Below, in pieces: positions 18,306 to 45,965 of a DNA stretch of 64,000 nucleotides. Numbering within the stretch: the stretch's first letter is position 1; each line of letters starts with the position of its first letter. The notes under the pieces are model-generated. The model saw only the letters and a program-made list of their open reading frames with translations, did no database searches and had not been told where the DNA came from. The DNA lies in contig NC_069003.1 of NCBI RefSeq assembly GCF_001194135.2, forward strand, positions 37,418,265 to 37,482,264. Direction: 5' to 3'. Both the position numbers and the translations under genes were made by a program. This DNA is from Octopus bimaculoides (taxonomy: Eukaryota).

Positions 18306-18389
18306 ATAAAGAAATGAATGAAATACTTGACTCAGCCATTTCAGAGATGCTAGGAAGAATTAAGCGGTCACTCGAAGAAGAAATTCCAG
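18306..18389 (+). CDS. Gene B exon 1 (first exon found; predicted amphipathic helix)
   Basis: ttcattcAG|ataaa ... attccag|GTaaat; 84 nt, phase 1-1, DKEMNEILDSAISEMLGRIKRSLEEEIP. Confidence 0.7.
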
Positions 18390-19246
18390 GTAAATGAATT
18401 TTGTTGTACTCTTTTTAAAAAAAACATTTTTTAATGACTTATTTGAAGGAAGTAGGAAGGGAAGTAACCATGAGCTTTTGGTGGTCTGTAAGCTCTGGTG
18501 AGAAGAAGGGAAAAAAAAAGCTCTCCCCATACAGGAGATCTGAGCTGAATGCTTGCAACAGAGTGGAATTTTAGAGGCCAGATGATAAGAATGCTAAAAT
18601 GAGCAATGGATGGAGTCTTTTGGGAAATTTTCACACAGTACCTGTCTGTCAAATGTTGCTCAGAAGATTTGAGTTAATCCAAAGGACACTTGCCTAATTA
18701 GATGTGCCATGGGGCTGAACCAGAAATCATGCAACTATGAAACAAACCTATTAACTACATAGCTATGCCTGCTTTTCAAACACCAGTCAAGGGGGAAAGA
18801 ATAAGTGGTTGAGAAATTGAGCTATTAGGGCATCGGTCACAAGTTCAAATCAGTTGTAAACTTTTTGCCATGCTTCTGGAAAGGGCACTTTAACTTCACC
18901 TGGTCCTTGGTTGCTATCAGCAAAGTACTCTCAATTGCAAACATTCACATTGAACCCTCAGTTCCTTTCTAGCCCATGTTTTGGTTAGTTATCAAATACA
19001 TCATTCTCACACAGCTGGGTAATATCTGGGCACTGTCTCTCATCCTCTAACTTATAGGATGTGTGGTTAGTCAACAAGAACTAATCGTTTCTATGTCAGG
19101 TCTTTAATTTCAGCTCGTAGTAATATACATTGTATACAGGCTGTTGGTCACAACATGCAATTAACTTTACTCTTATAAATGCAGAACTTAGTGATTTAGT
19201 AAAGAACAAATAATCAGTGCTATTGTTTGATTTTCTTTAATTTCAG

Positions 19247-19504
19247 CCAAACCACTGCCACCAATGGTCCCCATACCCATACGAGAGGAAGAGCCACAAA
19301 AGTTAGCGAAAGTTCTTGAGGACTTAGGAGTACAGACAGATGCAGTAGCCATGGATGGTGAAAAGAAAATGCAGTACCAGATCAACATTCAGGAGCATGC
19401 ACGCCCAGCATGCTCACCACTCCATATCAACTTGAGCCTGCCTCCTCATACTTGCCCATCAACGCCACCATCCAGTTCTCCAGCTCCAGTTAAATCGACT
19501 GCAG
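19247..19504 (+). CDS. Gene B repeat exon 2 (EDLGVQTD; PLHINLSLPPHTC)
   Basis: ttaatttcAG|ccaaa ... actgcag|GTaact; 258 nt, phase 1-1. Confidence 0.85.
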
Positions 19505-20012
19505 GTAACTAAAGTACAGGGTTCTCTATCTGATTGTTTCTACCTGATTGTCAGTTTGTCTGATTGTCTATTTGTTTGTCTGTCTGTTTGATCATCATCT
19601 GACTGTCATTTTTGTTTGTTTGATCCTCCGACTGCTCGTCTCTCTGACTGTCTCAGGGTTCTAACAGCCTAATTATCTCAACAGCCATCTGAAAGTCTCC
19701 CTATATTGGCTGTCTTTCCATCTAACTCTGTTCGATACCTTCAACTCTGCCTGCCTGCCTACCTACCTACCTACCTACCTACCTACCTACCTACTACATG
19801 CCTGTTTGTCTGTCTGTATGTCCCTCTGTATGTATGTATGTCTACTCGCCTGTCTGTCTGCTTATCCTTCAGTCTGTTTAATGAATTCATGAAGTGGAAT
19901 AAATTAGTTTCCAGTGAGAAAGAGTTGTTTAATGTTTCAGGCAGGTCCCTTTGTCCGATTGAAATAATTGAGATCCATTCCTCACAACAAACTAGTTTAC
20001 TTCCTTTTGTGA

Positions 20013-21020
20013 ATCATCATCATCATCATCGTTTAACGTCCGCTTTCCATGCTAGCATGGGTTGGACGATTTGACTGAGGACTGGTGAAACCGGATGGCA
20101 ACACCAGGCTCCAGTCTAATTTGGCAGAGTTTCTACAGCTGGATGCCCTTCCTAACGCCAACCACTCAGAGAGTGTAGTGGGTGCTTTTACGTGTCACCC
20201 GCACGAAAACGGCCACGCTCGAAATGGTGTCTTTTATGTGCCACCCGNNNNNNNNNNNNNNNNNNNNNNNNNNNNNNNNNNNNNNNNNNNNNNNNNNNNN
20301 NNNNNNNNNNNNNNNNNNNNNNNNNNNNNNNNNNNNNNNNNNNNNNNNNNNNNNNNNNNNNNNNNNNNNNNNNNNNNNNNNNNNNNNNNNNNNNNNNNNN
20401 NNNNNNNNNNNNNNNNNNNNNNNNNNNNNNNNNNNNNNNNNNNNNNNNNNNNNNNNNNNNNNNNNNNNNNNNNNNNNNNNNNNNNNNNNNNNNNNNNNNN
20501 NNNNNNNNNNNNNNNNNNNNNNNNNNNNNNNNNNNNNNNNNNNNNNNNNNNNNNNNNNNNNNNNNNNNNNNNNNNNNNNNNNNNNNNNNNNNNNNNNNNN
20601 NNNNNNNNNNNNNNNNNNNNNNNNNNNNNNNNNNNNNNNNNNNNNNNNNNNNNNNNNNNNNNNNNNNNNNNNNNNNNNNNNNNNNNNNNNNNNNNNNNNN
20701 NTAATGTTCAGCTTTTCTCTCAAGATACTTACACTCTGACGGGTATTCACATTGACATTACACATCCAACGGAGCATACTGGCTTCATTCCTTGCGAGCT
20801 TACGTATGTCCTCAGCAGTTACAGCCCATGTTTCACTGCCATGTAGCATGGCTGTTCGTACGCATGCGTCATACAGTCTGCCTTTTACTCTGAGTGAGAG
20901 TCCCTTTGTCGCCAGCAGGGGTAAGAGCTCTCTAAACTTTGCCCAGGCTATTCTTATTCTAGCAGCTACACTTTCAGCGCACCCACCCCCACTACTAACT
21001 TGGTCGCCCAGATAGTGAAT
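20013..21020 (-). mobile_element. RTE-X-like LINE 3' fragment with (CAT)n tail, interrupted by gap 20248-20701
   Basis: AKFRELLPLLATKGLSLRVKGRLYDACVRTAMLHGSETWAVTAEDIRKLARNEASMLRWMCNV; tail ggcgttaggaagggcatccagc...gttaaacgatgatgat. Confidence 0.85.
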
Positions 21021-21836
21021 GGTTTTGTATTTACCATTTGCTAGCCATCACTTGTTTTGGCAACCCTACCCTACTCTTCCCACAACCACTTCCCTCCCTC
21101 ATTCTCATTGTCGTCCCTTCCTGCACAATGTCTCTCAATCATCTCTTCCTTTCTGTACCTTCAGCCCTTTCTTTCTCTCACTCCCTCCCCTCGCTCCCAC
21201 ACTCCATTCTTGACCCCTCTTATACCTGCTACCATTCTCCATACCCTCTCATATACATCATCATGCTCCACTAGACCTTTTGAACCTCTTTATCTCCACC
21301 CCTCCACTGCTCCTACACCTTGCACATCATTCCACTACTTTCTGATCTCTTCTCCTCCCTAATCCTAACCCTTACCTTCTCCACCTTCACCTTCATTCAT
21401 TACTCACTACATTCATCTCTACCCCCATCTCTAATCATCTGTTCTTCTCTCCTCACATCTTCTTATGCTCTGACATCTAGTCACAACCATCTCTATCTTC
21501 ATTCCAGCTATTCCCACTCGCATCTATGTAATGTGGGATTGCCATGTATCTCCCCTATTACAAGACACCTGGGCTTTCCCACCCCCTCAATATCCCTCCC
21601 TTGTTCTTTCTTGTCATGCAAGCTACCCGTTGACCTTATTAATGTTGGTGGCATGAAAAAAGCACCCAGTACACACAATAAAGTGGTTGGCATTAGGAAG
21701 GGTATTTAGCCATAGAAATCATGCCTAAGTAGATACTGGAGTTTGACACAATCCTGTCAAACAACCAGATCCTGTAAAATCATCCAATCTATGCCAGCAT
21801 AGAAAACAAAAGGTTAAACGACGACGATGATGATGA

Positions 21837-21882
<46 letters not shown>

Positions 21883-22056
21883 GTATGTATGTATACATTT
21901 AATAATAGAAAACTTATACAAAAATGTATAATTACATGATGAGTAAAGCACTGGCACAGTTTAGACTACCTGTTGTTATATGTAGATTTACTTCAGAAAC
22001 TAAACATGTCATGCTTATTAAAATTCTAATACAAATTCCATCTCCTGCTTCATTAA

Positions 22057-22093
<37 letters not shown>

Positions 22094-22548
22094 AACTGTA
22101 GCATGTGCAGCAAGTCATAAGTGGAAGAAAACCTAGAGTAACATTACCCAGTCTGCATCAAGTTTTAATTTTCTCATTTGTTTTTCAGGCATGAGAACAA
22201 TCTCAACATGGCAGCTTCTAATATGACATGGGAAATGAAAAAGTGTGCATTGCTCATGGCCGTAGCTGTCAAATCTTAGCAATTCAGAAATCTTGACTAT
22301 GACTGGGGCCTGCATATTCTGGGTTGGGAAAAAGCTACAGGAGAAAGTAATTCCTTGTTGACAATCTGGACATATGAATTTATCCAACGGGTCTAGGAGA
22401 TCATCAATGACAACCCCAGTAGGTTGAAGGGGCCCATTGCTGAGTAAGGATGGTAGAGTTGAGTATCAAATGAGTGGTGCCTAAGTATGAATCCTATGTG
22501 TTGAGGAGAGGGGCAGCTGATGCCTAACAAGACCCAAAAGAACCACTA

Positions 22549-23367
22549 TGAGGTGGTATCAAAAAGTTGCTGGACTAATTCTGTAGCGTGCCAAAAGATG
22601 GTAGCACATGGTTGCATGCACAGTGAGAGCTAGCAGGGACCTTCATGAAGCAGTGAGCTGAGTGATGTTGCTGTGTTTACATTGCAAGTTGTGAAATTTT
22701 GCATTAAACTTGGGAAGTCTGCTATGGAGACATTGAGCATGCTTACAGCAACAGCAACAAGACAATGGGGTTATATGCAATGTTTTGAGTGCTTCAAAAG
22801 TGGAAGAACATCCCTGGAAGATGATGAGCAATCTGGGAAACCTGGCATGAGTGTCACCCCCAGAAATTTGGAGGAAATTCATCAGTTTGTACATGAAGAT
22901 CATTGGAGGACAATCAATGACATTTTGAAATGTTTGAAGGAGGACAATTGGCAAAAGAGATTGGCTCTGTGAAGCACGAAGAATTGGATTCTTCATGACG
23001 ACAATGCACCCTGTCACTTGTGAGTTTCTTGCCAGAAACGACATGGTATTGCTTCCACACCTGCCGCCCCCCACCCCTATTCACCAGATTTAGCACCTGC
23101 AGACTTTCATTTCTTCTCCAAGAGGAAAATGTAGCTCAAAGGTGACTGTTTTAATACCATTGTCAAGATGCAGAGCAAATCACAGAAGGTCCGTGACCCA
23201 CTTACTGAAAACAACTTCCAGGTTGGATTGCAAAAGTGGCAGGAACACTGGGACCGGTGTATTGCTGTGAAAGGGAACTATTTCAAAGGAGATGATGTTA
23301 ACATTTAGGTAAAGAAATTATTTTTTATTAAACATAACATGTCTGGGAACCTTTTGATGCCACCTCA
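22549..23367 (+). mobile_element. Internally deleted mariner element with both TIRs and TA flanks
   Basis: TA|tgaggtggtatcaaaaagttgctggac ... gtctgggaaccttttgatgccacctca|TA; transposase remnants (ECFKSGRTSLEDDEQSGKP, LHDDNAP, PYSPDLAPADF). Confidence 0.85.
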
Positions 23368-23691
23368 TATGTGACTATATGACCCCTCAAATTATGTGCC
23401 CTCCAAGCTGTCCTGAATTGGAAACCCTAGACAGCTGCATCAGGGGCATATTTGGTGGGTGGGAGGAGGTGTAGTTAGTTCCCTCACAATGACAAGCTTT
23501 AATTTGAGGTTGTCGTTGTCGACATGATACATGGGATGGGCAGATGTAAGCTGATGTTTGCATGCAGCCAATTACATGGTGCCATGAAGGTCGACATTGA
23601 ATATGTGCTATTTAACAGGGAGTGTGATTTAAGTTCAGTGTTTTGTGTTTTACCTTGTTTTGTCTTGTTCTTGGTTACATGGCACACCCTG

Positions 23692-23751
<60 letters not shown>

Positions 23752-24250
23752 CATACATACATGCACACACAGCACATACACACATGCATACACATACACA
23801 TATGCACATACACATATTATACACATACACATAAATATATATGTATATTTATATACATAAGTAAAAATTTACACATACAAACAGGTGTGTGTGTGTATGT
23901 GTGTGCGTGTGTTCGTGCATGTATATAAGTAAATAATTTTTGTTGTCAAAATATTTTTACATAGTCTCTCACAATGATGTGGCTTTTTGTTGACAATTAA
24001 TGCTTATTGCCTAATTTAAGTAGATATTTACAGTATGCACATTATATGTGTATACATATATGTGTGTATGCATATATATATTTACATGAAGATAAACATA
24101 TGTCCATTGGTCATAGAGTGACCAATGGTTTAACACCCATAAAGTGAAATTGGTCACTCATTGACCAGACATATATTTATCTTCGTCTAAATACATTATT
24201 GCTCTAACTTTTAGAGTGTACTTCTTTTCCAAATATATGATCCACTGATG

Positions 24251-24315
<65 letters not shown>

Positions 24316-24317
<2 letters not shown>

Positions 24318-24442
24318 TTATTTAAAAGCAGCAGAAATATAACAAAAAAACCGTTACTCTGAGTTTCACGTTCCCGATGAACGGGAACGTGAAACTCAGA
24401 GTAACGTTTTTTTTGTTATATTTCTGCTGCTTTTAAATAAAG
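24316..24442. repeat. Near-perfect palindrome, 61-bp arms, 5-nt loop
   Basis: ctttatttaaaagcagcagaaatataac...ttcccg atgaa cgggaa...gttatatttctgctgcttttaaataaag; one mismatch seen. Confidence 0.9.
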
Positions 24443-24512
24443 CATATTACTCTACCTCTGGTATTTGAGTACTCTTTTTTCCACCTTGTTGCACATTTTA
24501 TGTGCTTACTCC

Positions 24513-24565
<53 letters not shown>

Positions 24566-27500
24566 ACACACTCACACACACACACAAACACACATACATA
24601 TAGACATATACATCTGGCTGTAGAAAGTGGGAAAAGGTTGCTTAATGTATGTAGTGGTGGTTTTTATTTCTTCTTCCAAATCTTACGAGATTCAATTTGT
24701 TGTTGCTCCTCATGCCCGAATCAAGGACAGCACCAATCATCAGAGTTTGGTCGGGTTTAGGAAATCGAAACCTATTAGGGATTCAAACTTCAATGGATTC
24801 TTCTCTGGAGAGTAGGAGCCCTTATATTATTTTAGGGAACACAAACAGCAAGAGAATCTTAACTGGTAATGAAATATCTGGGGACACTATAATTTAGATG
24901 AAGGAAGATGAGGAGGTGGAGCAGTTTCAGGATGTGCAAGTATATGTTCCTTAAAGAGACAGAAGTAATAAACTCAATACTGATGAAAGTTTCAACAACA
25001 GAAACAACAACAACAGTCCCTACAATAGTGAGTGCTGTGGAATGATCCAAAAAGAAGCAAGAAAACAGCTGAAACAGCAGAACCTATAAATATGCATTGC
25101 ATCCAGGAAATAGTACTAATACATACCACACGCACACGCACACGCACACATGTGTGCGTGTGTGCAGGAAACACTCTCAGCTCAGTAAAAGATTCAAAAC
25201 TAAAACACTGCACATAGCCGAGGTACATAGAGCTTGCTTGGTAGTGAGAGCAATAGAAATAAGAGGGCTTAGTATCATCATCATCATCATCATCGTTGTC
25301 ATCATTATCATTGTCGTCATCATCATCATCATCAATGTCCATTTTCCCATGCTTACATGAGTTAGATGGAATTTGTTGCATCAGATTTCCCACTGGATAC
25401 TCCACCAGTTACCAAACCTCACTTGCTTCCAAGTAATGTAATATTTTCCTCTTGAGCAGACATGTTTCCCGGATGACTGGAAATTAATGACACTGTTTGT
25501 ATGATGTTGGCAATTGATTTTACCTTTATGACATGATGCCCAGTTGATGAGGCGCGCACACACACACACACAGAGACACACACACACACACACACACACA
25601 CATATTAATGGTTTTCTTTCAGTTTCCAGTTACCAAATCCACAAACAAAGAGGCTTTGGTTGACCAAGGGCTATAGTAGAAGAAATATACTCAAAGGGCA
25701 ACATTGTGGGATTGAATCTAAAATCACATGGTTGGGAAGAAAACTTCTTGGTCACTCAGTCATGATGACAGCAATGATGATGATGACGACGATGATGATG
25801 ATTTTGGTACCCAGAAACAAACTTGTAGTGAAAGGGCAAAGTTGAGACTATTTCCCAAATGTATTAGTGGCAATGATATCTATTTATTGATTCTGGAGGG
25901 ATGAAAGTCAAATTTGAACATGGAAATTGAAAAGATAACTAAATATTATTTCTAATGTTGGCAGAAGAATACACATTTGAGAAGCTACAAGGAAATAAAT
26001 TTACACACACACACACACACATATAATATATATATTTATATATATAATTTATTTCCCTTCTAGTACATATGCAAGAAAATGAGGAAGCCCCCACATGCTC
26101 AGCAAAGTTTCTGGAAACAGTAGCCAAATATATGTCAATTATTATTATTAGTGTGTGTGTGTGTGAGAGAGAGAAAGAGACAGAGAGACAGAGAGAAAGA
26201 TAAAGGATCAACTAATTCCAGGTAACTTTCCAAGCAATTTCAAAGGCTTTATTTCATCGGTGCAGGCATGGTTAACAAGTTAAATTCCCAACCACATGGT
26301 TTTGGGTTCAGTCCCACTTTGTGGCACTTTGGGCAAATCTTTTTACCATAGCCCCAGGTTGACCAAAGCCTTGTGAGTGGATTTGGTTGGGAGAAACTGA
26401 AAGAAGCTCATCATATATTTGTGTGTTCGTGTTTATGTCTCATTGTCTTGATATCACATGATAGCTGCAAACAAGCATCACCGTGTTAGAAGCAGTGTCA
26501 TTAGTTTCCAAGCTTTCGTGAAAACATGTCTCGTTAAGGGGAAATATTACATTACCTGGAAACAGGTGAGATTTGGTGACTGGAAGGGCGTTCCAGCTTT
26601 AGAAAATCTGCCCCAACAAATTCCATCCAACCCATGCAGACATGGAAAACTGGACAATAAAATGATGATGATTGTGATTGTGATGATGGTGATATTTAAA
26701 AGGAAGGAAATACTGGATAATGTAGACCTTGATGTGCAAAAGGACAGATGGTCAAACTTGGAGTGTCTTTGATCATAAGATCTGCTCAATCAGGCTAACC
26801 TGGGTCTAAACAACAGCAACAATACTTGGACTTAATTTCTTGACTCAAAGACAACTGCCAGTGAGATCTGAACCCAGAATGTATAGGGGCCATAATGTTA
26901 AAGAAGGAGGAAACTCCATCCTACCAAAATGTTAGTCTTTCAATATTGATGTGATTTTTTTCTTAATTGTGTTGTTTTGCTATTTCTTTCTTATTGGCTG
27001 CCATGTCATGTCATGCCCTGCTGTCTGTCCAAGGAGGATGAAGTGTTCTTACCGTGAAAAACCTATTGATGTCAAGATTCCAGATGAAGATGTTGTTATT
27101 GTGGTATCTAATTGTAAACAAACACCCCAACAGAATTGTTGCATTACCATGAAACGAAATCAGAAGTAAAAAGGAAATGGCTAATAACGGATAATAAAAG
27201 AATATAACAATAACAACAGCACTAGTATTTGTTTGAAATCTATGTATTCGTCTCTTTCTCTCACTTCGTCTCTCGTCACCTTTCTCTCTTCACATACAGA
27301 CATGACTGTAAGTATATATGTCTATGTGTGTGTGTGTGTGTGTGTATATTTAGTATTAGCTGAAGCTTTGTCATCTCTCATCACTCAGAATATCTTCCCT
27401 GGAAGCAATCCTCAGATGAGGACAGTGGATGGTGCTTCAGTATGTTTGGATGATACAGCAAGATTTCAACTTGTTGCAAGCTTCCAGTTTATGACTTGTT

Positions 27501-27961: not shown

Positions 27962-28007
<46 letters not shown>

Positions 28008-28221
28008 CACACACATACATAAAAGCTTTGCACTGATTAAAGTACAGCCAAGCTTGGCTCATATGTTCTTCAATAAAGCATCTTTAACAAAGCTTTTAAA
28101 TCACATTTACTCTTTTAAAATAGATATATTGAAATTTACTCCATGTATTATGTTTTTTGTTTAGTCTAAGCCTCTTTCTTTTATCTAATTAAGAAACAAT
28201 CAATATATATATAATTACATG

Positions 28222-28317
<96 letters not shown>

Positions 28318-28406
28318 TATATACATATGTATATATGTATGTATGTGTATGTTTGTGTATGTATATATATCTGTGTGTATATACATATGTGTGTGTATGT
28401 ATATGT

Positions 28407-31275: not shown

Positions 31276-31461
31276 AGCCAAGAAAAGAACCTAAAAGTAC
31301 AGAGAACGCCAGTGTGCAAACTGTTAAGATAGGTGATGTTGCCAATTCACCGAAGACACAAAATGATACCCAGAGGGAAACGAAACCAGGTGTTTTACCA
31401 ATCCATATCAATGTGACCATGCCTCACATCTGTCAACCGACAACAGACAAACCCACTCCAG
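31276..31461 (+). CDS. Gene B repeat exon 3 (ENASVQTV; PIHINVTMPHIC)
   Basis: gactacAG|agcca ... actccag|GTaagt; 186 nt, phase 1-1. Confidence 0.8.
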
Positions 31462-33260: not shown

Positions 33261-33486
33261 TTCTAATTGTGACAATTTAGCTTGTATTCCTAGTATGGAT
33301 TTTGAAATAGAATTAACAAATAGTTTATGTTTTGCCAATCATTCTAATCCACCACATACAACTGATTCATTATTGTAAGTAGGAATATTTCAGGTCATGT
33401 GTGTCACTACTTCACACTGTCTCTCCTTTTAAAGCTAAAAAATGTGACTAATCAAAAAATATTAATTAATGCTTCTTTAATTTCAG

Positions 33487-33609
33487 CTGCATCACAGCCA
33501 GACACTGCAGCAGAGCAAAAAAAGAAGCCTGCACTTAAGGAAATCAGTGTGCAAACTGATGATATGGTTGCTGACACAAAGGAAGATGTGGCCCCTGAGA
33601 CCACTCCAG
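33487..33609 (+). CDS. Gene B repeat exon 4 (KEISVQTD)
   Basis: ttaatttcAG|ctgca ... actccag|GTagcg; 123 nt, phase 1-1. Confidence 0.8.
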
Positions 33610-33897
33610 GTAGCGAAACTTATGAGTTCTCTATTTGACTAAAACCTTGTATATCCATCAGTTTGTGTGATTGCCTCTTTGATCCTCTGACTGCCAGCTC
33701 AAACCATTTGACTGCCTCTCCAATGGACTATCAATCTATTTGTCGGACATCAGCTTCATTGTCTCTCTGTCTGTCTGATCAATTATGTTTGCCTGCATAC
33801 CTGCCTGCCAGTCTTATTGTGTAACAATCTAATTACACTGTAACACATTTTGTTTTTGAATAAACTAATTACTGCTATGTGTAATCTTTAATTTCAG

Positions 33898-34020
33898 CTG
33901 CATCACAGCCAGACACTGCAGCAGAGCAAAAAAAGAAGCCTGCACTTAAGGAAATCGGTGTGCAAACTGATGATATGGGTGCTGACACAAAGGAAGATGT
34001 GGCCCCTGAGACCACTCCAG
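33898..34020 (+). CDS. Gene B repeat exon 5 (KEIGVQTD), near-identical to exon 4
   Basis: Same splice sites as exon 4; 123 nt; two substitutions seen relative to exon 4. Confidence 0.8.
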
Positions 34021-34298
34021 GTAGCGAAACTTATGAGTACTCTATTTGATTAAAACCTTGTATATCCATCAGTTTGTGTGATTGCCTCTTTAATCCTCTG
34101 ACTGCCTCTCCAATGGACTATCAATCTATTTGTTTGTCTGACATCAGCTTCATTGTCTCTCTGTCTGTCTGATTGATTATCTGTTTGCCTGCATACCTGC
34201 CTGCCAGTCTTATTGTGTAACAATCTAATTACACTTTGTAACACATTTTGTTCCTGAATAAACTAATTACTGTTATGTGTAATCTTCTTTAATTTCAG

Positions 34299-34445
34299 CT
34301 GCATCACAGCCAGACACTGCAGCAGAGCAACAAAAGAAGCCTGCACTTAAGGAAATCGGTGTGCAAACTGATGATATGGGTGCTGACACAAAGAAAGACA
34401 TGCACCCACCATTAACAGTTCAACTTATCGTAGAAGAGAGTCCAG
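34299..34445 (+). CDS. Gene B repeat exon 6 (KEIGVQTD, divergent 3' end)
   Basis: ttaatttcAG|ctgca ... agtccag|GTaact; 147 nt, phase 1-1. Confidence 0.8.
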
Positions 34446-35504
34446 GTAACTAAGCTGCTGTGTTCTCTATTTCACTAAAACCTTGTATATCCATCAGTTT
34501 GTGTGATTGCCTCTTTGATCATCCAACTGCCAGCTCAATCATTTGACTACCTCTCCAATGGACTATCAATCTATTTGTCTGTCTGATTGTCTGATCGATT
34601 ATCTGTTTGCCTGCATACCTGCCTGCCAGTCTCATTGTCTAACAATCTAATTACACTTTGTAACACATTTTGTTCCCAAATTGTGTTATTTGCTTATTGC
34701 TTATGATGAAAAAGTATAGAAAATAGTTGCCTTTTCCTTCAAACTTTACTCTTGCAACCTGTTTGATGAGATTTTGAAATTTACCTATTTTTTTCTGTGG
34801 GAAAAACGAGTGTATTTATACATTTTCATTCGCATAAGATCAGAAAAATCAACAGATGAATCAACTTTAACATGTACATACGGTTAGGTTATATAAAAGC
34901 GAACACAAAAGTTCAAAAGTGAGTGGAATTGAAATATAAATTACTTTCAGATTCAGCCTCAAAAAAATCTCCCCAGTTTTCATTATATGCTCCATGCTAG
35001 CAGTGTTCAAAGTCCAGGATATCCTAATTAAATCACTTGCCTTACTTCATTAAGTATGTCTCCTTATTCTCTCCTTCAGTTTATCAAGATGGGCAAAAGT
35101 AGAATTGAACTAAGAATTGTAAGATAACAAACCATTTGTTAATTCTTACAGAAACTAAAGCAATGTTTCTGCCCCGTAGTAAACTACTTTCAGCTGAATG
35201 GAGTGGGTCAATTGAGAGTTTAGTATCATTGTCATAGAGACAATGAAATACCAGTGTCAAGGAATAAGTCACTGACCTCAGATTGGTTGTCCAGTATTTT
35301 GGCCATCTACACATTCATGTTGTCTGCACTTTGTGGTTAATCAAAAAAAAAATCACTCCTGACACTTTTATCCTTCTTCAACCTCATTACATTAGCTAGG
35401 GATCCCACATTGTATATTAAAAAACCCTTAATTACAATTATAGAGCATTGGGGGTTGGTAAATAAGAAGTAATCAGTGCTATGTTTGACTTTCTTTAATT
35501 TCAG

Positions 35505-35738
35505 CCACAGCAGGGTCAGCAGAGACCCTTGAGCCACAAAAAGAGGGTAAACCTGTTGAAACTGTAAGTGTACAGACTGAGGAGACAGCTGCTGACAGAG
35601 AAAAGCCAGTACTGTACGATATCAACATCCAAGAACATGCACGGCCAGAAAATACGCCACTTCGTATCAATTTCAACCTGCCTCAGCATACTTGTCCAAA
35701 ATCAGCAGCTGAACCTCCTTCAGATGAGGAATCTCAAG
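35505..35738 (+). CDS. Gene B repeat exon 7 (ETVSVQTE; PLRINFNLPQHTC)
   Basis: ttaatttcAG|ccaca ... tctcaag|GTattt; 234 nt, phase 1-1, open. Confidence 0.8.
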
Positions 35739-36224: not shown

Positions 36225-36425
36225 AATCCTCTGACTCACAAAATGAAGATGAAGTTACTGATGGTGTGGGTGTACAAACTATTGAGACAGGTGATGATAG
36301 GCCGAAACCAGTGCAGTACAAGATCAACATCCAAGAACACAAGCGCCCAGCTACCTCACCACTCCATATTACTCTGAACCAACCTCGTCATACCTGTCCA
36401 GCATCAACAGTTCAATCCCCTCCAG
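36225..36425 (+). CDS. Gene B repeat exon 8 (DGVGVQTI; PLHITLNQPRHTC)
   Basis: ctccaccAG|aatcc ... cctccag|GTaaca; 201 nt, phase 1-1. Confidence 0.8.
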
Positions 36426-36868: not shown

Positions 36869-37087
36869 CTACACCACAGCCTGCCAAAAAACCTAAAATT
36901 ATGAAGGACCTGAGTGTGCAGACAGGTGAGAATGGTGCTGAAAAGTCAAGCCCAAACCAGTACCAGTTCAATATCCCAAAACAGTCAGGCCTGGAATCCT
37001 CACCAATACGTATCCATGTGAATGTACCTCCTCATGACTGTCAATCGCCATCAACAGTTAAACGGCCATCAGTCAGAGACATCTCAG
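36869..37087 (+). CDS. Gene B repeat exon 9 (KDLSVQTG; PIRIHVNVPPHDC)
   Basis: ttaatttcAG|ctaca ... atctcag|GTaagt; 219 nt, phase 1-1. Confidence 0.85.
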
Positions 37088-37109
37088 GTAAGTAAATTGG
37101 TCCAGTCCA

Positions 37110-38213
37110 GCCGTGTGTTTGTGTTGTAGTGGAAATGGTATTCCCCTTCCCATGTATCAGTGTCAGAGAGGTCAGCAGAAGTAGAGTCATTGTATGAGTT
37201 CTCAGTTGGAGTCAGTGTCAGTTCCATGTGATATACGAGTTTGAGTTCCTGCCAAAGTAGCTGTTTAAGAGTCATTGTCTAGCAGATGAGCCTCATCCCG
37301 AAAGATCTGTAGAGCTCAACCAGGATGTCCTGCAAACCCTGGGGGAACAAAATTCCATAATAACTGTTGAGGAATTAGCAGAGGAGTTTGGATTTGGACA
37401 TTCAACCATTCATCAACACCTTCATGCCATTGGAAAAGTCAGGAAATTGGGTCAATGGGTTCCTCACAAACTTTCCAAGTTTAATCGCATGCATAGAATG
37501 AATGTATGCTCTTCTTTGCTGTTGCATCACATGAATGAACCTTTTTGGACCGAATAGTGACAAGTGACAAGAAATGGGTTCTCTATAAAAATGTCAAGTG
37601 CCTAGGACATTGGGTAAGGAAAGGAGAAACACTGGCACCCCAGGCTAAAGAAGGTCTTCACCCATGTAAGTTGTTGTTAACTCTTTTGTAGAATATGAAA
37701 GGTTTAGTCCAGTTTGAACTTTTAAACCCAAACCAAATGAAAAGAAAGAAGATCTACTGTGAGCAGCTTGAGTGGCTTAAGTCAGCGCTAGAAGAAAAAT
37801 GACCATCTTTGGTTTCAAGGCAAAAGGTATTCTTCCATCAGGATAATGCTCAGCGACATACAGGGAGGATGACATTCCAAAGGCTGGAACAGTTTGAATG
37901 GGAAACGGTGCCCCACCCACCATATTCACCAGACATTGTCCCATCTGATTATCATTTATTCTGTAATCTTCAAAATCATTTGGATGGAAAAATATGAATC
38001 CTGTAGACAAGGTCAAAACAATACTAGAGGACTATTTTTCATGAAAGATATGTGAATTTTGGAAGAGGGGCTTTGCAAGTCTACCAGATAGATGAAAGAG
38101 CATTGTAGAAAATGAAGGAGAGAATATTTTAGATTAAAAAAGAACTTTGCTTATCTTAATTTTGAAAAATAAAAGAAGTATAAAAAAAATCAACATTATT
38201 TATGGGATGACAG
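37110..38213 (+). mobile_element. Mariner (Mos1/Hsmar-like) transposase pseudogene inside a gene B intron
   Basis: WVPHKLS, RIVTSDKKWVLY, FFHQDNAQRH, HPPYSPDIVPSDYHLF with stops and frameshifts. Confidence 0.88.
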
Positions 38214-38637
38214 AAAAGTTAAATAAAGAAGAACCAATCAATTCTATGTGCAAACCTCCTGTATTTCTTGCACAACTAGAGACCTCATACACTGAATAAA
38301 GAAGTGCACATTGGTTTGATGGTTACAGCATCACATTGCCTTTCCTTTTACAACTACAGAACTTGTGATTAATTTAAAAGAATTAATCAATGCTGTGTTT
38401 GAAACTTTTATTTAATTCAGCCACATTTATGATCAACCATGAGGGTTAATCATAATGTGATATATTTAGAAATAGTTATGGAGGGGAATGGCACAATATC
38501 TCATTGCTTTTTCACCTTAAAACTACAAAATAAAAAGAACTAATTAGTGTTACGAAGAACTAATTAGTGTTACGAAGAACTAATTAGTGTTACGAAGAAC
38601 TAATTAGTGTTATGCTTGATTTTTTTTTTCCTTTCAG

Positions 38638-38823
38638 ACTCATCACAGCCACCAAAACGACCTAAACAAGTTGGGGACATGAGTGTACAGACTGATAATG
38701 AAACTAGCAAATCAAAGATAACTCAGGCAGACAAGCATGGACATGTGTATATCAATGTGAAGGTACCTCCTCACACCTGTACCCTGCAGACAGCTAATCC
38801 CAACTTAGACAAGAGCACTCAAG
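38638..38823 (+). CDS. Gene B repeat exon 10 (GDMSVQTD; VYINVKVPPHTC)
   Basis: cctttcAG|actca ... actcaag|GTaact; 186 nt, phase 1-1. Confidence 0.85.
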
Positions 38824-39084
38824 GTAACTAAACTCCCTTGCATTCAGTTCAGCTGTGTGTCTGCCTGCCTATCAATTTGAAGGATTGCCTCTTTGATCAT
38901 CTGACCACCAGCTCAATTATATATCTGTCTGTTTGTCTATTAACTGGTCTTTGTATCTATCTCTTCATCAGTCTGGCTGCATGTCTAACAGTCTGTCTCA
39001 CATAAATACAGTCAAATCATCCAACCCATGCCAGCATGGAAAGTGGATGTTAAACGATGATGATGATGATACACACACATACAC

Positions 39085-39127
<43 letters not shown>

Positions 39128-39192
39128 CATACATGCACATATAATGGTTTAATGATGAACTAATCAGTGCTATATTTTATCTTTAATTTCAG

Positions 39193-39399
39193 CCACCCGA
39201 AAGCAATCAAAACCAGCTACATATAAGGGTGAAGGTATGCAGACCAGTATGGCATCTACTGACGATTCAAAGATGATACAGACTAAAAATCAGTATTATG
39301 TACTCCCAGATGGCACACCTTTCTATATCACTTTGAACACAGCTTCTGTCACCAATCAACAAGCAGCAACACAACCCAACTCTGTTGGCAAAAGTCCAG
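39193..39399 (+). CDS. Gene B repeat exon 11 (KGEGMQTS)
   Basis: ttaatttcAG|ccacc ... agtccag|GTaact; 207 nt, phase 1-1. Confidence 0.8.
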
Positions 39400-41644
39400 G
39401 TAACTAACAAATATGTAACATAGAAATGGAGAGAAGTTTTGAAATCAGCATGAAAAATTAGTCTCAAAGAGTTGGTCTGCATTCATGATGAGTATAATAC
39501 ATTTAATTTTGTTGGCCAGTGTTATCAATCCGATTGCTTGTCTGTCTGTTTGATCATCTGACTTCCCTTTTACTTGCCCACTTCACTGTTTAACTGTCTA
39601 ATTATCTGTCTAGCTGTCTGCCTTCTAGGCACTGCCTGCCTCCACCTGTCTCCAAGAGCCTATGTTTTACTGTCTGTGTGATTGATAGCTTACATCCACA
39701 TTGAGGGGGGGGGGCTTCTGAAAGTAATTCTGAGAATAATGAAAAACATTTAAAATGGACTATGAAAATAGGAAACTTCCCAACATAAATATTGTAGAAA
39801 TCAGTTTATTTAAGGATAAATAATCTTTATTAAGGATTATATCATTAAAGACAAAAAAATAACCTGTATACATACTTCAAATCTCCAGCATTAACACATA
39901 TTCCTGCAAACAACTCATGCATAAGACACATGTATACACATGGTAGTTACATAGTACATACACAATATGTGCAACTCACATGCATGCATACACACACATA
40001 CAAGATACATATACATGCATTCAGACTACCACACATACATAGCACAAACACAGCAAATGCAAACACGAACAAGTTTGGCACAAACACATCACACAGACAT
40101 GAAATAATTATAGGAAAGTGGTTATACACCATTAGGTGTACACCCGCTTTCCTATNNNNNNNNNNNNNNNNNNNNNNNNNNNNNNNNNNNNNNNNNNNNN
40201 NNNNNNNNNNNNNNNNNNNNNNNNNNNNNNNNNNNNNNNNNNNNNNNNNNNNNNNCTATATTAAATTCTAAATAAACAACGAAACGCTGACTCCGAACTA
40301 TCAACGCAACAATATTTATTTATGGTGAAAATTTGTGAAGCTCTGGTGCTGACATGTTAGAGAGCTCCGCTGTTGGACATCTGTCCTCGTCACCGGCCGG
40401 CGAGAAAAGAGAAAGAATCAGGGCACCAAACTTGGATATTGATGACTACGCATGCGCACAAGACAAGGCTTACTACATAATCATTAAAAACTAGATATTT
40501 ATGCCTAAAAGAAGAGAAAAGGTCATGCAGACCGAAATCAGCTGTGATCGAACTGCTAACCACTCATGTACATCTGCCACTGAAAGTGATTCCATTATAC
40601 CTTGTGTACTTATAGTTCACATTGTCTACACTGTATGGAGTCAACTCCTTTCCTGCATAATAAATAAAAACCATTTCTCTGAGGGTAGCAGAGTTGTCTC
40701 TGCTTTTCAGTTGACTAAAACTTTAGTTGATGTCAAGTTTATTCTGAACTGTCTTGATTTTAGGTTTGGCTTCTTCCAGGTCTAGAATTCTTCTCTACGT
40801 CTGCTCTAAGGAGTAGGTTATCAGCATATAGGAGTGGCCATGGACGGCTGGTCTTAATCTTCTCTGTAATATCTTAAAGAACTCTAACTGGGAGCCAAGT
40901 CATGTGGAACATCTTTTTGCATGCTAAATTCCCCATTATCAACTCTCACTTTTCTACTTGCTAAAACTTTGGTCTTTGCCTCGATCAATCCTTATTGCTA
41001 GAACTATAATTGCAGTCGTCATGTCCTTCAACCTGGTCATCATGGTGCTTCCCAAAATAAGCAATGAAAGTCACTAGTCAAAGACATTCCGTTGAGGTGA
41101 TTCACAAAAAGGGCCTCATAAAACCCACTCCTTTTGCTCATTAGACAGTTCTGTTTATGGTACATATGCAAAGATAATAATTGCTGTTGCTTTACCTGCA
41201 ATTAGCCGAAACTTAATTATTCTCTTACATTCTGTATACTTTAATTACATTACCTGTCCAATCTTCCCCCACCAGTATTCCTCTCGTAAACCAACGTTGT
41301 TACCTGCCCCTCCAAAGTATGTACCTGGTTTCATTACTGAAGTTCCTTTTGCATGCCATTTACTGTAGACATCTACTTGCCCCCACTCCGGCATCTCTGT
41401 ACTTGCACAATTTTACCTTTCATTGTGTAGACGGAGATAATTACAACCTTGGGTTGTGACTAGTTTAATCCTCAAGGTCTGTCCTCTGCATTTGAAAGAA
41501 ATGTGCATGTACTTAATGATGGTCAAGAGGTTCATGCACACTGTCATGTTTTTACCCTAACCATCCTATTATCATGTGTAGCATTAGCACGGTAAGGGCT
41601 AATCCCTCTCTCTCAGTTCAGCTATGTTTGATCTCTAATTTCAG

Positions 41645-41854
41645 CCGCTCAAAAGCAATCAAAACCAGCTACATATAATAAGGATGTAGGCATGCAGACC
41701 AGTATGACATCTACTGACGATTCAAAGATGATACAGACTAAAAATCAGCATTATGTACTCCCAGATGGCACACCTGTCTATATCACTTTGAACACACCTT
41801 CTCTCACCTGTCAACAAGCAACAACACAACCCAACTCTGTTGGCAAAACTCCAG
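41645..41854 (+). CDS. Gene B repeat exon 12 (KDVGMQTS)
   Basis: ctaatttcAG|ccgct ... actccag|GTaact; 210 nt, phase 1-1. Confidence 0.8.
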
Positions 41855-42445
41855 GTAACTAACAACAAGCTACTCCTGTGTGATTATGTCAGATTACTTG
41901 TCAAATTGTGTGTCTAATCCCCTGATTACACTGGTCAGCAAGTATTTTTCATCAAGCATATGTCAAGGTGTACCTAGTGTAGTTTTTAACACTGGTTTCA
42001 AATATAGAAATTAGATTTTTGACATCATGTACAGATCAGGAAGTTTTTTGGTTCTAACTCATGCATTATCAAGAAATTCCAATTAATGACGTGTATGCAT
42101 GCATTTCATTTACTTCATGGAAAAATACCTTTAAAATAAACTATGTTATTCATTGCTGCATAGTTCAGATGCAGTATTTCATCTTCTTAAATTAAACAAT
42201 CAAGTTTTGTCTGATGAAATGGGTATTGTATTGCTAAAAATGATATTGTATCCATATGTGTTCCATAATGGCATCGCATCCGGAAGTATTTGGTTAGAGT
42301 TCTAGAGTGAACCTTTTAAGTACACAGCTGTACCTGTACATGTATCAATGTGTGTGTGTGTGTGTGTGCACGCGAGTGTATGAGTGTGTGTATATGTACA
42401 TGCATATACATATATATACACACATATATACATACATATGTATAC

Positions 42446-42478
<33 letters not shown>

Positions 42479-42783
42479 NNNNNNNNNNNNNNNNNNNNNN
42501 NNNNNNNNNNNNNNNNNNNNNNNNNNNNNNNNNNNNNNNNNNNNNNNNNNNNNNNNNNNNNNNNNNNNNNNNNNNNNNNNNNNNNNNNNNNNNNNNNNNN
42601 NNNNNNNNNNNNNNNNNNNNNNNNNNNNNNNNNNNNNNNNNNNNNNNNNNNNNNNNNNNNNNNNNNNNNNNNNNNNNNNNNNNNNNNNNATATATATATA
42701 TATATATATACATGCATACATATATGCATATATAATGGTTTAATGATGAACTAATCAGTGCTATATTTGATCTTTAATTTCAG

Positions 42784-42993
42784 GCACCCGAAAGCAATCA
42801 AAACCAGCTACATATAATAAGGATGAAGGTATGCAGACCAGTATGGCATCTACTGACGATTCAAAGATGATACAGACTAAAAATCAACATTATGTACTCC
42901 CAGATGGCACACCTGTCTATATCACTTTGAACACACCTTCTCACACCTGTCAACAAGCAACAACACAACCCAACACCATTGGCAAAACTTCAG
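42784..42993 (+). CDS. Gene B repeat exon 13 (KDEGMQTS)
   Basis: ttaatttcAG|gcacc ... acttcag|GTaact; 210 nt, phase 1-1. Confidence 0.8.
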
Positions 42994-43560
42994 GTAACTA
43001 ACAACAAGCTACTCCTGTGTGATTATGTCAGATTGTGTGTCTAATCCTCTGATCATCAATCCGATTGCTTGTCTGTCTGTTTGATCATCTGACTTCCCTT
43101 TTACTTGCCCACTTCACTGTTTAACTGTCTAATTATCTGTCTAGCTGTCTGCCTTCTAGGCACTGCCTGCCTCCACCTGTCTCCAAGAGCCTATGTTTTA
43201 CTGTCTGTGTGATTGATAGCTTACATCCACATTGGGGGGGGGGGCTTCTGAAAGTAATTCTGAGAATAATGAAAAACATTTAAAATGGACTATGAAAATA
43301 GGAAACTTCCCAACATAAATATTGTAGAAATCAGTATATTTAAGGATAAATAATCTTTATTAAGGATTATATCATTAAAGACAAAAAAATAACCTGTATA
43401 CATACTTCAAATCTCCAGCATTAACACATATTCCTGCAAACAACTCATGCATAAGACACATGTATACACATGGTAGTTACCTGCACATGTACCCATATGT
43501 GTGTTCTTGTGTGTGTGTGTACATGCATACATATAGATATATACATGCATACATGCATAG

Positions 43561-43805
43561 TGAAAAAGAGAACACCTATTCTGAACTATTGAGAAATCTG
43601 CAGTCACTCTATCCAGATTACAAGTTCAGATTTATACCTGTGATTATTGGAGAACTTGGGTATATTACACACTGCCTAAATACCAATCCTGAGAAATTAG
43701 GCTTCTAAAAATCAGAAAGGAGAAAACTAATTCGAAGACTACAGATCCAGTCCATCACTGGAACTGTAAAAATCTGTAAAACTTTTGCAGAAATTTATCA
43801 TTTAA
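43561..43805 (+). mobile_element. R4/Dong-like LINE 3' (restriction-like endonuclease) fragment
   Basis: EKENTYSELLRNLQSLYPDYKFRFIPVIIGELG...LQIQSITGTVKICKTF. Confidence 0.7.
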
Positions 43806-44112
43806 ATATATATAATCATGTCTAGATATGCAAATATATGCATGAGAATACATACAGAAAACAAAACATACAAATCTGCACATATACATACATATATACA
43901 CACAAAAATACCCTGTTGTTGATGTTGAAATTTCAATGAAAGAGCCTTGGATCTAGGTTAGAAACTGGCTCTTTCTCTGTTGGCAAGAAATCTTGAAATA
44001 AAAATGAACAATGACGTACATACATACATACAAACATCCATACATACAAGTATACACACACACATACATACACGCATGCAAGTGTGTGTGTGTGTGTGTG
44101 CCTATGTATGTA

Positions 44113-44755
44113 TGTGAGGCCTAACCAACAGGTATCGGGACTGGTGTTATAAAAACAAAACTACAACATGTACCAATTTGGCCTTTAATCTACTTCAAAG
44201 TAGTCCCCTTCAGAAGCCACACACTTAATCCAGCATTGTTTCCATTGATGGAAGCATTCCTGGAACTCATTTTCTGGGATAATCAGCAGATGCCTTGTGG
44301 CATTCACTTTGATTTCCTCAATATCCTGAAATCTTCTCTCTTTCAAGCGAGATCTGATTTTTGGTAAGAGGAAAGAGTTGCAAGGGGCAGGATCTGGGGA
44401 ATACAGTGGCTGTTGGGCCTGGGGAATGTTGGGCCTGGGGAATGCTGTGCCTCGACAAAAACTGCTGCACTGCATGGGTAGGTGCATTGCCATGGTGCAA
44501 TTACCTCTCACTGAACGCATGCAGTTGTGGCCTTTTCCGATGCATAGCATCCTGCAATCACTGCTAAACGCCACGGCAGTACTCTTTGTTTCCTCTTGGC
44601 CAGCTGGAGCCTACTCATCATGAATAATCCCCTTGAAGAAAATGGTCAACAGTTTCTTCACATTGCTTCAGTCTCGGAGAGGTTGGGAGTCTTCCACTGC
44701 AAAGATTGAGCCTCTGTTTTGGGGTCATAGCCATAGACACATGATTCATCACCCA
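44113..44755 (-). mobile_element. Mariner relic (3' half)
   Basis: HHGNAPTH, YSPDPAPCNSFLLPKIRSRLKERRFQDIEEIK...FQECFHQWK...CVASEGDYFE. Confidence 0.85.
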
Positions 44756-44779
44756 TTATGACTGTTTCTTTATTTTCAG

Positions 44780-44989
44780 CTGCCCAAAAGCAATCAAAAC
44801 CAGCTACATTTAATAAAGATGTAGGCATGCAGACCAGTATGACATCTACTGACGATTCAAAGATGATACAGACTAAAAATCAGCATTATGTACTCCCAGA
44901 TGGCACACCTGTCTATATCACTTTGAACGCACCTTCTCTCACCTGTCAACAAGCAACAACACAACCCAACACCATTGGCAAAAGTCCAG
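44780..44989 (+). CDS. Gene B repeat exon 14 (KDVGMQTS)
   Basis: tattttcAG|ctgcc ... agtccag|GTaact; 210 nt, phase 1-1. Confidence 0.8.
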
Positions 44990-45758
44990 GTAACTAACAA
45001 CAAGCTACTCCTGTGTGATTACGTCAGATTGTCTAATCCTCTGATCATCAATCCGATTGCTTGTCTGCCTTTTGCTTGCCTACTTCACTGTTTAATTTCT
45101 TCTCTCTCTCTCATGTGTATGTATGTATGTATTTATGTGTGTGTGTATATGTGTATGTTTGTATGTGGGGTCACTTATGAGGCTCTCATAAGTGCTACTG
45201 GTAACATGTAATCCAGTACAACCTGTTGCATGGTCGGGTTGCCGGCAACTAAACTGGCACCCCCACCAGGCTACCCTGGTGAGGGGGTTGCTAGAAACCC
45301 AACAGGATTAAAAACAAGACCTGTTGAAAGCTCGGATGGACCTAGTGCAGGCTCAACGGCTATCTGGCAATAGCACGGGTACGCAGAAATACCGGGATGG
45401 TGTCCGGCGTGCTGAAAGACCACTGGGAGTGAGGCACCCCTCAGCTTTTGTTGAAGCATGTTTATGTGGGGAAATATCTGTTTGCTTGAAAACAGGTGAT
45501 AGGAAGGGTATCATGTAGAAAACTTGCCACAATGAACTCTGAGACCCATGTAAGCATAGAGAATGGACCTTAAAATGATGATGATGACGACGATGATAAT
45601 GATGATGATAATGGCTACCCCGATCCAGAATTGAAGACAGAAATATTTCAGTTCATGAATGTCACACCATCCCATTGTCTCTTCTCTTTTAACAACAGAA
45701 CTTAGTGATTTAGTGAAAAACTAATCAACTCCATCTTCAATTTTTTTTAAAATTTCAG

Positions 45759-45965
45759 CCAGTCCAGCCCAGTCAAAGAGATCTAGACTGAAGGAGGATG
45801 TAGGTGTGCAGGCTGATGAGATATCTGACAATTCAAAGATGACACAGGTCAACAGTCAGAACTATGTGCTTCCAGATGGCTCGCCCCTCCAGTTCACTTT
45901 CAACAGGCCACCTAACACTCATCCAAAAGCAACAGTGCAACCTACTTTGAATAGAAAAATTCCAG
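45759..45965 (+). CDS. Gene B repeat exon 15 (EDVGVQAD); last exon found, no stop codon
   Basis: aaatttcAG|ccagt ... attccag|GTaact; 207 nt, phase 1-1. Confidence 0.8.

Follow-up and report, generated by a model that had tools for sequence, protein, structure and literature searches.

Fourteen symmetric exons of an Octopus bimaculoides gene, each encoding a candidate LC8-docking motif

What is made from a run of small exons that each carry the same short, glutamine-centred motif, and could this motif be a docking site for LC8 (DYNLL)? The question is raised by a stretch of 64,000 nucleotides from Octopus bimaculoides (NCBI RefSeq assembly GCF_001194135.2, contig NC_069003.1, positions 37,418,265 to 37,482,264 of the forward strand). 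The whole stretch is called the window; positions refer to it unless another sequence is named. The repeated exons are named units 1 to 14. They belong to one protein-coding gene, whose product is probably a new multi-site LC8 partner, judging from the likeness of its motifs to known LC8 ligands.

Fourteen octapeptides had been listed in an earlier note on this DNA. All 14 were located at the positions given there, on the + strand, each in its own exon. The pattern [GS][VM]Q[TA] is matched 18 times in the + strand frames, versus 1.8 +/- 1.4 times in shuffles. The coding exons are given below. Block 2, a second conserved segment, and the secondary site are defined further on; a slash marks a splice junction; nt, nucleotides; aa, amino acids; AF2, AlphaFold2.

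15975..16011, + strand: coding exon A; start codon and MGVDENNMDFIE, phase-1 donor GAAG/gtaat; kept in O. sinensis.
18306..18389, + strand: coding exon B; DKEMNEILDSAISEMLGRIKRSLEEEIP, amphipathic helix (AF2 helix, residues 13-37).
19247..19504, + strand: unit 1, 258 nt; EDLGVQTD at 19318-19341; YQINIQEHARP..SPLHINLSLPPHTCP; 94 % aa identity to O. sinensis.
31276..31461, + strand: unit 2, 186 nt; ENASVQTV at 31302-31325; LPIHINVTMPHICQP; weakest flanks (A at -3, V at +2); DNVSVQTD in O. sinensis.
33487..33609, + strand: unit 3, short, 123 nt; KEISVQTD at 33537-33560; no block 2; QT changed to QY in O. sinensis.
33898..34020, + strand: unit 4, short, 123 nt; KEIGVQTD at 33948-33971; no block 2; 98 % nt identity to unit 3.
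34299..34445, + strand: unit 5, 147 nt; KEIGVQTD at 34349-34372; degenerate block 2 remnant PPLTVQLIVEESP.
35505..35738, + strand: unit 6, 234 nt; ETVSVQTE at 35558-35581; YDINIQEHARP..TPLRINFNLPQHTCP.
36225..36425, + strand: unit 7, 201 nt; DGVGVQTI at 36260-36283; YKINIQEHKRP..SPLHITLNQPRHTCP; acceptor ccaccag/.
36869..37087, + strand: unit 8, 219 nt; KDLSVQTG at 36904-36927; SSPIRIHVNVPPHDCQSP.
38638..38823, + strand: unit 9, 186 nt; GDMSVQTD at 38673-38696; secondary SKITQAD; HVYINVKVPPHTCT.
39193..39399, + strand: unit 10, 207 nt; KGEGMQTS at 39225-39248; secondary SKMIQTK; YVLPDGTPFYITLNTA.
41645..41854, + strand: unit 11, 210 nt; KDVGMQTS at 41680-41703; secondary SKMIQTK; YVLPDGTPVYITLNTPSLTC.
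42784..42993, + strand: unit 12, 210 nt; KDEGMQTS at 42819-42842; secondary SKMIQTK; block 2.
44780..44989, + strand: unit 13, 210 nt; KDVGMQTS at 44815-44838; secondary SKMIQTK; block 2.
45759..45965, + strand: unit 14, 207 nt; EDVGVQAD at 45794-45817; A at +1 in both species; secondary SKMTQVN; YVLPDGSPLQFTFNRPP.
48332..48396, + strand: RefSeq terminal exon; GCHMVSCPALHPRRMKCCCHK and a stop; doubtful, acceptor dinucleotide TG not AG.

All 14 unit exons are phase 1-1 with lengths divisible by 3, so that any subset of them splices in frame; the combined open frame is 907 aa. Exons 15975-16011 and 18306-18389, the 14 units and 48332-48396, when joined, are identical residue for residue to RefSeq XP_052831867.1 (O. 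bimaculoides, 968 aa, machine-assigned name "proteoglycan 4"). The exon joins, which were derived independently, are therefore those of RefSeq. An older model of units 1-10, identical in sequence, clusters with XP_052831867.1 in a database search, and the orthologue in O. sinensis is XP_036368543.1 ("proteoglycan 4-like"). The array had been called undescribed; this holds for its function, but predicted gene models already exist under a misleading name. An in-frame TGA lies 12 codons 5′ of the exon A ATG. Among the N-terminal residues, 5/41 differ between O. bimaculoides and O. sinensis, all by conservative changes.

Three assembly gaps (runs of N) lie within the array. All are intronic, 95 to 10575 nt from the closest exon; the gap at 42479-42689 stops 95 nt before the unit 12 acceptor, which is intact. 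Each exon is self-contained in frame, so the length of a gap cannot affect the reading frame. A gap might hide an extra unit; the O. sinensis locus, which is gap-free, also has exactly the same 14 units.

The exons appear to be spliced together, as the earlier note supposed: the splice signals are conserved, and the RefSeq models of two species, made independently, agree. The unit acceptor is ttaatttcag/ and the donor CAG/gtaa. The open frame around each motif starts in the translated acceptor (…SLISA, from tctttaatttcag) and stops in the translated donor (…PGN and a stop, from CCAG/gtaact). The acceptor region (TTCTTTAATTTCAG), a branch-like ctaat and the donor CAG/gtaact are alike across paralogous units with just 25-50 % protein identity. 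In unit 7 a mutation has turned the usual tttcag into tttcat, and the acceptor is ccaccag/ instead; the choice is identical in O. sinensis. There, 28/28 splice sites are kept, and the four differences in exon length (+3, +6, +3 and -12) are all multiples of 3. A genomic contig of a third, more distant cephalopod (Logan SRR11869390) carries a unit-8 orthologue with the same acceptor and donor.

Each unit holds one linear motif of beta-strand type, with the consensus K-[DE]-x-[GS]-[VM]-Q-T-[DES]. The anchor is V-Q-T in 9/14, M-Q-T in 4/14 (units 10-13) and V-Q-A in 1/14 (unit 14). According to the rules of Jespersen et al. (PMC6607443), an LC8 site has Q at position 0 and a mid-sized branched or hydrogen-bonding residue at -1 and +1. 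P, D or E is favoured and hydrophobic residues are disfavoured at +2; aromatic residues are absent from -2; the residue at -3 is at least the size of valine; -4 is polar, often D; -5 has a slight basic preference; internal proline is excluded (PMC6607443). Twelve of the 14 octopus motifs break no exclusion rule, the exceptions being unit 2 (A at -3, V at +2) and unit 7 (I at +2). Near-identical cores are found in VQT binders validated by isothermal titration calorimetry: SON RCVSVQTD, MAST1 RHQSVQTE and ZFPM1 SDKGVQTP (PMC6607443, Table 2). The nNOS (MKDTGIQVD) and GKAP (LSIGIQVD, QSVGVQVE) peptides are also close LC8 ligands (PMC12797016). A position-specific scoring matrix (PSSM) derived from published peptides, 28 binders and 33 non-binders, has a leave-one-out area under the curve of 0.77. 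It places 14/14 motifs on the binder side, with scores from 0.6 to 9.0 (binder median, 2.9; non-binder median, -1.65); units 3, 4, 5, 8 and 9 outscore every non-binder. The claimed resemblance to an LC8 recognition site thus finds support in the anchor and flank rules and in cores near those of VQT binders, nNOS and GKAP. Binding itself is a prediction from sequence, whose chances are put slightly above even.

Is the motif all that the exons share? The 28 units of both species were aligned. Units are 41-86 residues long, the Q-to-Q spacing is 41-73 residues, and the linkers between sites are 33-65 residues. The first conserved island is the QT motif: the Q column is 96 % Q and the T column 89 % T, -1 is always V or M, and -2 is G or S in all 28 units but one (O. 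sinensis unit 11, D). Among the 11 long units, Q is the sole invariant column. The second island, block 2, is present in 11/14 units: P-x-x-x-P-Φ-x-I-[NT]-Φ-N-x-P-x-H-T-C (Φ, hydrophobic), e.g. SPLHINLSLPPHTCP or TPVYITLNTPSLTC. Units 3 and 4 lack it and unit 5 has a remnant only. Its column conservation among paralogues (P.96, P.91, I.92, P.96) is on par with that of the QT anchor. A segment of the type Y-x-I-N-I-Q precedes it in five units (1, 2, 6, 7 and 8; degenerate in unit 2). The statement that the rest of each exon diverges strongly is therefore not upheld. Readings of block 2 as a calcineurin PxIxIT site, an LC3-interacting region, a SUMO-interacting motif or an RVxF motif were rejected; the register or the key residues misfit across units.

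The earlier note had also claimed exactly one motif per exon. Each exon does have one primary motif, but units 9-14 add a second, weaker Q-centred site 13 residues after it (SKITQAD, SKMIQTK, SKMTQVN; pattern [DS]-K-x-[TI]-Q-[TVA]). In XP_052831867.1 the secondary sites of units 10-14 are residues 628-634, 698-704, 768-774, 838-844 and 907-913. The secondary site is poorly kept in O. sinensis, and its PSSM score is non-binder-like.

Constraint was compared between O. bimaculoides and O. sinensis (synonymous divergence, dS, about 0.1) over the positional orthologues, units 1-9 and 14. Changed residues, the ratio of nonsynonymous to synonymous divergence (dN/dS) and the Fisher test versus the rest are as follows.

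Anchor triplet: 1/30 residues changed; dN/dS 0.33; p 0.04.
Five flank positions of the octapeptide: 9/50 changed; dN/dS 0.73; p 0.85.
Block 2: 9/115 changed; dN/dS 0.27; p 0.012.
Rest of the protein: 73/419 changed (17 %); dN/dS 0.75; reference.

Over all 14 units, 2/42 anchor residues are changed versus 134/594 in the rest (p = 0.005). QT is thus more constrained than its surroundings, as had been expected; within the octapeptide only the anchor shows this, and block 2, an unrelated element, is at least as constrained. In the third species (Logan SRR11869390), unit 8 keeps MKELSVQTGENG and SPIHINVDLPPHDCQSP, and the segment in between is rewritten (61 % identity overall). Because block 2 is equally constrained, LC8 docking cannot be the whole function.

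The product is predicted to be an intrinsically disordered protein in which a short N-terminal amphipathic helix is followed by the 14 repeat units. The composition is dominated by P, T, K, Q and S. AF2 was run on single chains: one unit, with the alignment of paralogues, and a 668-aa model. For one unit (predicted template modelling score, pTM, 0.18), no secondary structure is proposed, and the local confidence (predicted local distance difference test, pLDDT) peaks at 82 over block 2 in unit 6. The 668-aa model has a mean pLDDT of 33, a helix at N-terminal residues 13-37, and short low-confidence strand pairs at YxINIQ and block 2 segments, none at QT motifs. Pfam gave nothing above cut-offs for the gene models, the C-terminal units and XP_052831867.1, and a profile search of the PDB gave 0 matches. 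AF2 and composition thus agree with the disordered Pro/Ser/Thr-rich context proposed earlier. The exon B helix NEILDSAISEMLGRIKRSL has a ΦΦ-xx-ΦΦ-xx-ΦΦ-xx-Φ pattern that recalls AKAP-type amphipathic docking helices, or else a helix for dimerisation; this is an idea only.

If the motifs dock LC8 dimers, two chains would be bridged in parallel register, giving a ladder of up to 14 rungs. With rungs 33-65 residues apart, a flexible beads-on-a-string dimer would be expected, not a rigid rod of the Nup159 or KANK1 type. The Nup159 DID and KANK1 L2 also use tandem LC8 sites to dimerise a disordered segment, but their linkers are of 4-5 residues or short and uniform, which yields stiff rods; a flexible assembly is more likely here because the linkers are long. 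The "polymer scaffold" of the earlier note, taken as one like Nup159, is overstated or unsupported on this ground: in known systems, long linkers give flexible, heterogeneous complexes. Most octopus motifs look individually competent, unlike those of KANK1, which are non-canonical and each weak.

Numbers of sites in known partners are 11 plus 3 more in ASCIZ (human: 11 TQT and 3 SQT/VQT), 5 in Nup159 and at least 15 in KANK1. ASCIZ/ATMIN is alike in having a long disordered region with many LC8-type sites; its linkers are variable and sometimes long, and it forms heterogeneous beads-on-a-string duplexes. The octopus protein differs in having no sequence homology to it, no zinc fingers and no SQ/TQ cluster: no zinc-finger match was found in Pfam, and ASCIZ-like proteins are not among the profile or sequence matches. 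Its sites are VQT or MQT sites of the K-D-x-G class, one per exon, with regular spacing of about 70 residues and a second conserved block. ASCIZ is pan-animal, whereas the octopus gene appears octopod-restricted. nNOS, GKAP, SON, MAST1 and ZFPM1 share the motif subclass with G or S at -2 and V or I at -1; these proteins are otherwise unrelated, and each has one or two sites, not an exon-encoded array.

Block 2 has to be accommodated as well. It lies mid-linker, has alternating hydrophobic residues and is flanked by prolines; once LC8 has aligned the chains, it might pair as a hairpin or an inter-chain strand, or it might recruit a second partner. There is a precedent for LC8-promoted self-association of adjacent segments (PMC3995210; for GKAP, PMC12797016). 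A tentative extension is that each exon is a two-part module: an LC8-docking strand and a second strand or hairpin (Y-x-I-N-I-Q ... P-Φ-x-I-[NT]-Φ-N-x-P-x-H-T-C). LC8 would align the chains, and zipping or recruitment of the second partner would follow. Scaffold length could depend on how many symmetric exons are included, as varied by alternative splicing or by fast changes in copy number, and a membrane anchor would be added if the hydrophobic reading of the last exon, described below, is real. This extension is put forward as doubtful. The N-terminal region of the dynein intermediate chain offers a model for such a two-motif unit: it is disordered, and an LC8 site lies beside a beta-strand site for the Tctex dimer. 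Each of the two sites occurs there only once; they are neighbours, their order is the reverse of that in the octopus unit, and no homology was detected.

The same observations bear on a different explanation, in which the array is functional but its QT strand docks elsewhere (Tctex/DYNLT or another beta-augmentation domain), or in which the GVQT, YxINIQ and PLHINL strands self-associate as beta structure. Block 2 and YxINIQ have alternating Φ-x-Φ-x-Φ, are the sole strand sites of the AF2 models and have the top local pLDDT; the constraint on block 2 equals that on the anchor; and the Tctex site of the dynein intermediate chain also includes a V-Q-A/T strand. AF2 places no strand at the QT motif, however, and predicts no compact fold (pTM 0.18-0.26), and K-D-x-G-x-Q-T-D matches LC8 ligands position by position. 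The literature search found no usable Tctex/DYNLT motif definition for comparison with block 2 or the QT motif. Docking elsewhere or self-association is judged possible, though clearly less probable than docking to LC8.

Several points weigh against LC8 docking along the whole array. An anchor is no guarantee of binding: many TQT peptides and all three IQT peptides tested by Jespersen et al. failed to bind, as did one LQT peptide (PMC6607443). No validated binder with an MQT anchor was found in the literature, which concerns M at -1 in units 10-13; unit 14 has A at +1. The flank positions of the octapeptide (dN/dS 0.73) are no tighter than background. The inter-site linkers (33-65 residues) are far longer than in cooperative LC8 rods. 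The statistics of constraint come from two closely related species, with modest p-values; the third species is represented by one fragment. In O. sinensis, unit 3 (L001 54692-54814) has QT changed to QY, unit 13 (L001 91672-91881) has a stop exactly at the Q codon (KDVGM, stop, T), and the RefSeq model skips units 10-12 and ends at the unit 13 stop; the distal array may be decaying or alternatively spliced there. Splicing and expression rest on predicted gene models. Where the gene stops on its 3′ side is uncertain, since the terminal exon has a TG acceptor and a likeness to repeats, and no O. sinensis counterpart of it was found.

The terminal-exon segment 48332-48396 resembles a dispersed repeat (73 % to an intronic repeat of the O. 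sinensis locus, L001:40536-40831), and no counterpart turned up at the orthologous position in O. sinensis. In the window, its open frame runs upstream (48223-48396, + strand) through a very hydrophobic stretch, LLFLIVLFYYFFLIG. If the canonical AG at 48285/6 were used, LLFLIVLFYYFFLIG would be added in frame, and the product would look tail-anchor-like, followed by a Cys-rich end (KCCCHK). Segment 47272-47388 was considered as the true 3′ exon and rejected, having no open frame. It has 96 % identity to O. sinensis, versus about 84 % for the background, and a tRNA-like core, GGATTTGAACTC; it is probably a short interspersed nuclear element or a tRNA-like element, not an exon.

Could the array be a young, fast-drifting repetitive reading frame with little or no function, its motifs alike through recent copying and gene conversion? 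Units 3-5 are a tandem triplication of about 405 nt (33474-34681), seen by repeat search; exon arrays were not reported by Tandem Repeats Finder. Identity among units 10-13 (39000-45100) is 90-96 % within species versus 83-89 % between species, and units 3-4, like units 10-13, are more alike within than between species. This implies gene conversion, unequal crossing-over or parallel expansion (concerted evolution). The gene grew via tandem duplication of a symmetric phase 1-1 exon with its intron flanks. Outside the anchor and block 2, evolution is near-neutral, and blocks of copies are homogenised within species. A largely functionless repeat would agree with dN/dS of 0.75-1.1 outside the two blocks, with the homogenised units 3-4 and 10-13, with the stop codon of unit 13 and the QY of unit 3 in O. 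sinensis, with searches that found no relatives beyond octopods and with the dubious terminal exon. Yet the old units, 25-50 % identical, have Q in all and T after Q in all but unit 14. The retention of 28/28 splice sites, with 4/4 indels in frame, the two discrete islands of low dN/dS and the third species, more distant, in which both blocks of unit 8 are kept and the middle is scrambled, also argue against it. This explanation is judged unlikely, and a functional array that docks LC8 is preferred.

The RefSeq name proposes another product, a secreted mucin- or lubricin-like proteoglycan. The likeness to PRG4 (lubricin) is one of Pro/Thr/Lys-rich repeat composition only: units 3-4 have KEDVAPETTP, which resembles the PRG4 repeat KEPAPTTP. 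The N-terminus (MGVDENNMDFIEDKEMNE), in contrast, is acidic and non-hydrophobic, without a signal peptide. Pfam finds no somatomedin-B or hemopexin domain, which PRG4 has, and conservation falls on Q, T, I and P rather than on S/T runs of glycosylation type. The name "proteoglycan 4" is a compositional artefact, and a proteoglycan is scarcely credible here.

Where else does the family occur? An exhaustive hidden Markov model search of 1.84 billion representatives returned Octopus proteins, one Logan fragment, chance matches to the motif only, and nothing else. A broader profile of the unit found the same Logan fragment only, and a query of the 907-aa concatenation against a word index matched the models of O. 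bimaculoides and O. sinensis only. The family appears to be restricted to octopods, so the claim that it is lineage-specific agrees with both the profile and the word-indexed searches. A metagenomic protein that matches block 2 (CSPLWITLWIPSYTHPS) was rejected as a relative; it is on dense, prokaryote-like metagenome contigs. The literature search found no paper that mentions these accessions or the Sequence Read Archive runs. An unrelated 871-aa protein is encoded on a eukaryote-like contig (ENA ERZ24894558, ctg23433l, 10001-12616). About 8 copies of LME[ND]MGVQTDP occur in it, together with a coiled coil at its N-terminus and a hydrophobic segment at its C-terminus; it appears to be an independent GVQTD array, and possibly a convergent multivalent LC8 client.

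Is the array part of a neighbouring gene? ERICH3-like exons start about 9.5 kb downstream of it on the same strand. DUF4590 (PF15257) is encoded at 60939-61265 and 62936-63364 (+ strand, E = 1e-7 and 1.6e-23), and Pfam did not find it in XP_052831867.1. The exon at about 55475-55570 (…LTAYFSNRYLRRHLRKIGL; ...EYNSLTDSNLTAYFSNRYLRRHLRKIGL) is presumably the ERICH3 N-terminus. If the array were the 5′ part of the ERICH3 transcription unit, the shared strand and the downstream position of ERICH3, the unconvincing RefSeq terminal exon and the absence of a start codon immediately upstream in the visible ERICH3 N-terminal exon would be accounted for. The acceptor of that exon (about 55475) is phase 2, however, and the array donors are phase 1, so that a direct join is out of frame and ERICH3 is a separate downstream gene; the RefSeq models of two annotation rounds also keep the genes apart. 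A shared transcription unit is very improbable. The role in sperm or cilia suggested in the earlier note was drawn from adjacency to ERICH3 alone. It is unsupported, because adjacency in an animal genome is no evidence of shared function.

Other features of the neighbourhood, with ORF for open reading frame, are the following.

2373-3068 and 6857-7288, + strand: long, acidic, His/Asn-rich ORFs without database or Pfam match; the second holds the LC8-like SERGTQVI. Their reading as "ERICH3" was rejected: the database search gave no match and ERICH3 was found downstream instead.
17006-17323, + strand, and 54830-55132, - strand: ORFs that read like fragments of reverse transcriptase or long interspersed nuclear elements; no Pfam match at E <= 0.01.
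20166-20849, - strand: ORF that reads likewise; spans the assembly gap 20248-20701.
51430-51957, + strand: ORF with a helix-turn-helix of Tc3-type transposase (PF01498, E = 2e-11), a Tc1/mariner remnant between the array gene and ERICH3.

What would the array mean for LC8 biology and for octopods? A misleading database name, "proteoglycan 4", is corrected in any case. Other LC8 clients with comparably many sites have already been described, and no medical or broad mechanistic consequence follows unless block 2 is a new interaction motif. If the motifs bind LC8, the protein would rank with ASCIZ and KANK1 among the known LC8 partners of highest valency, and would be the first with every site on a symmetric, duplicable exon of its own. 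The two-part module, if true, would be a new design among LC8 clients, with exon-by-exon evolution of linear-motif valency. Given LC8 binding, the gene would be a natural system in which to ask how multivalent LC8 assemblies depend on valency, on linker length and on a conserved element in the linker, and it would show how exon duplication and gene conversion build and tune a lineage-specific disordered scaffold.

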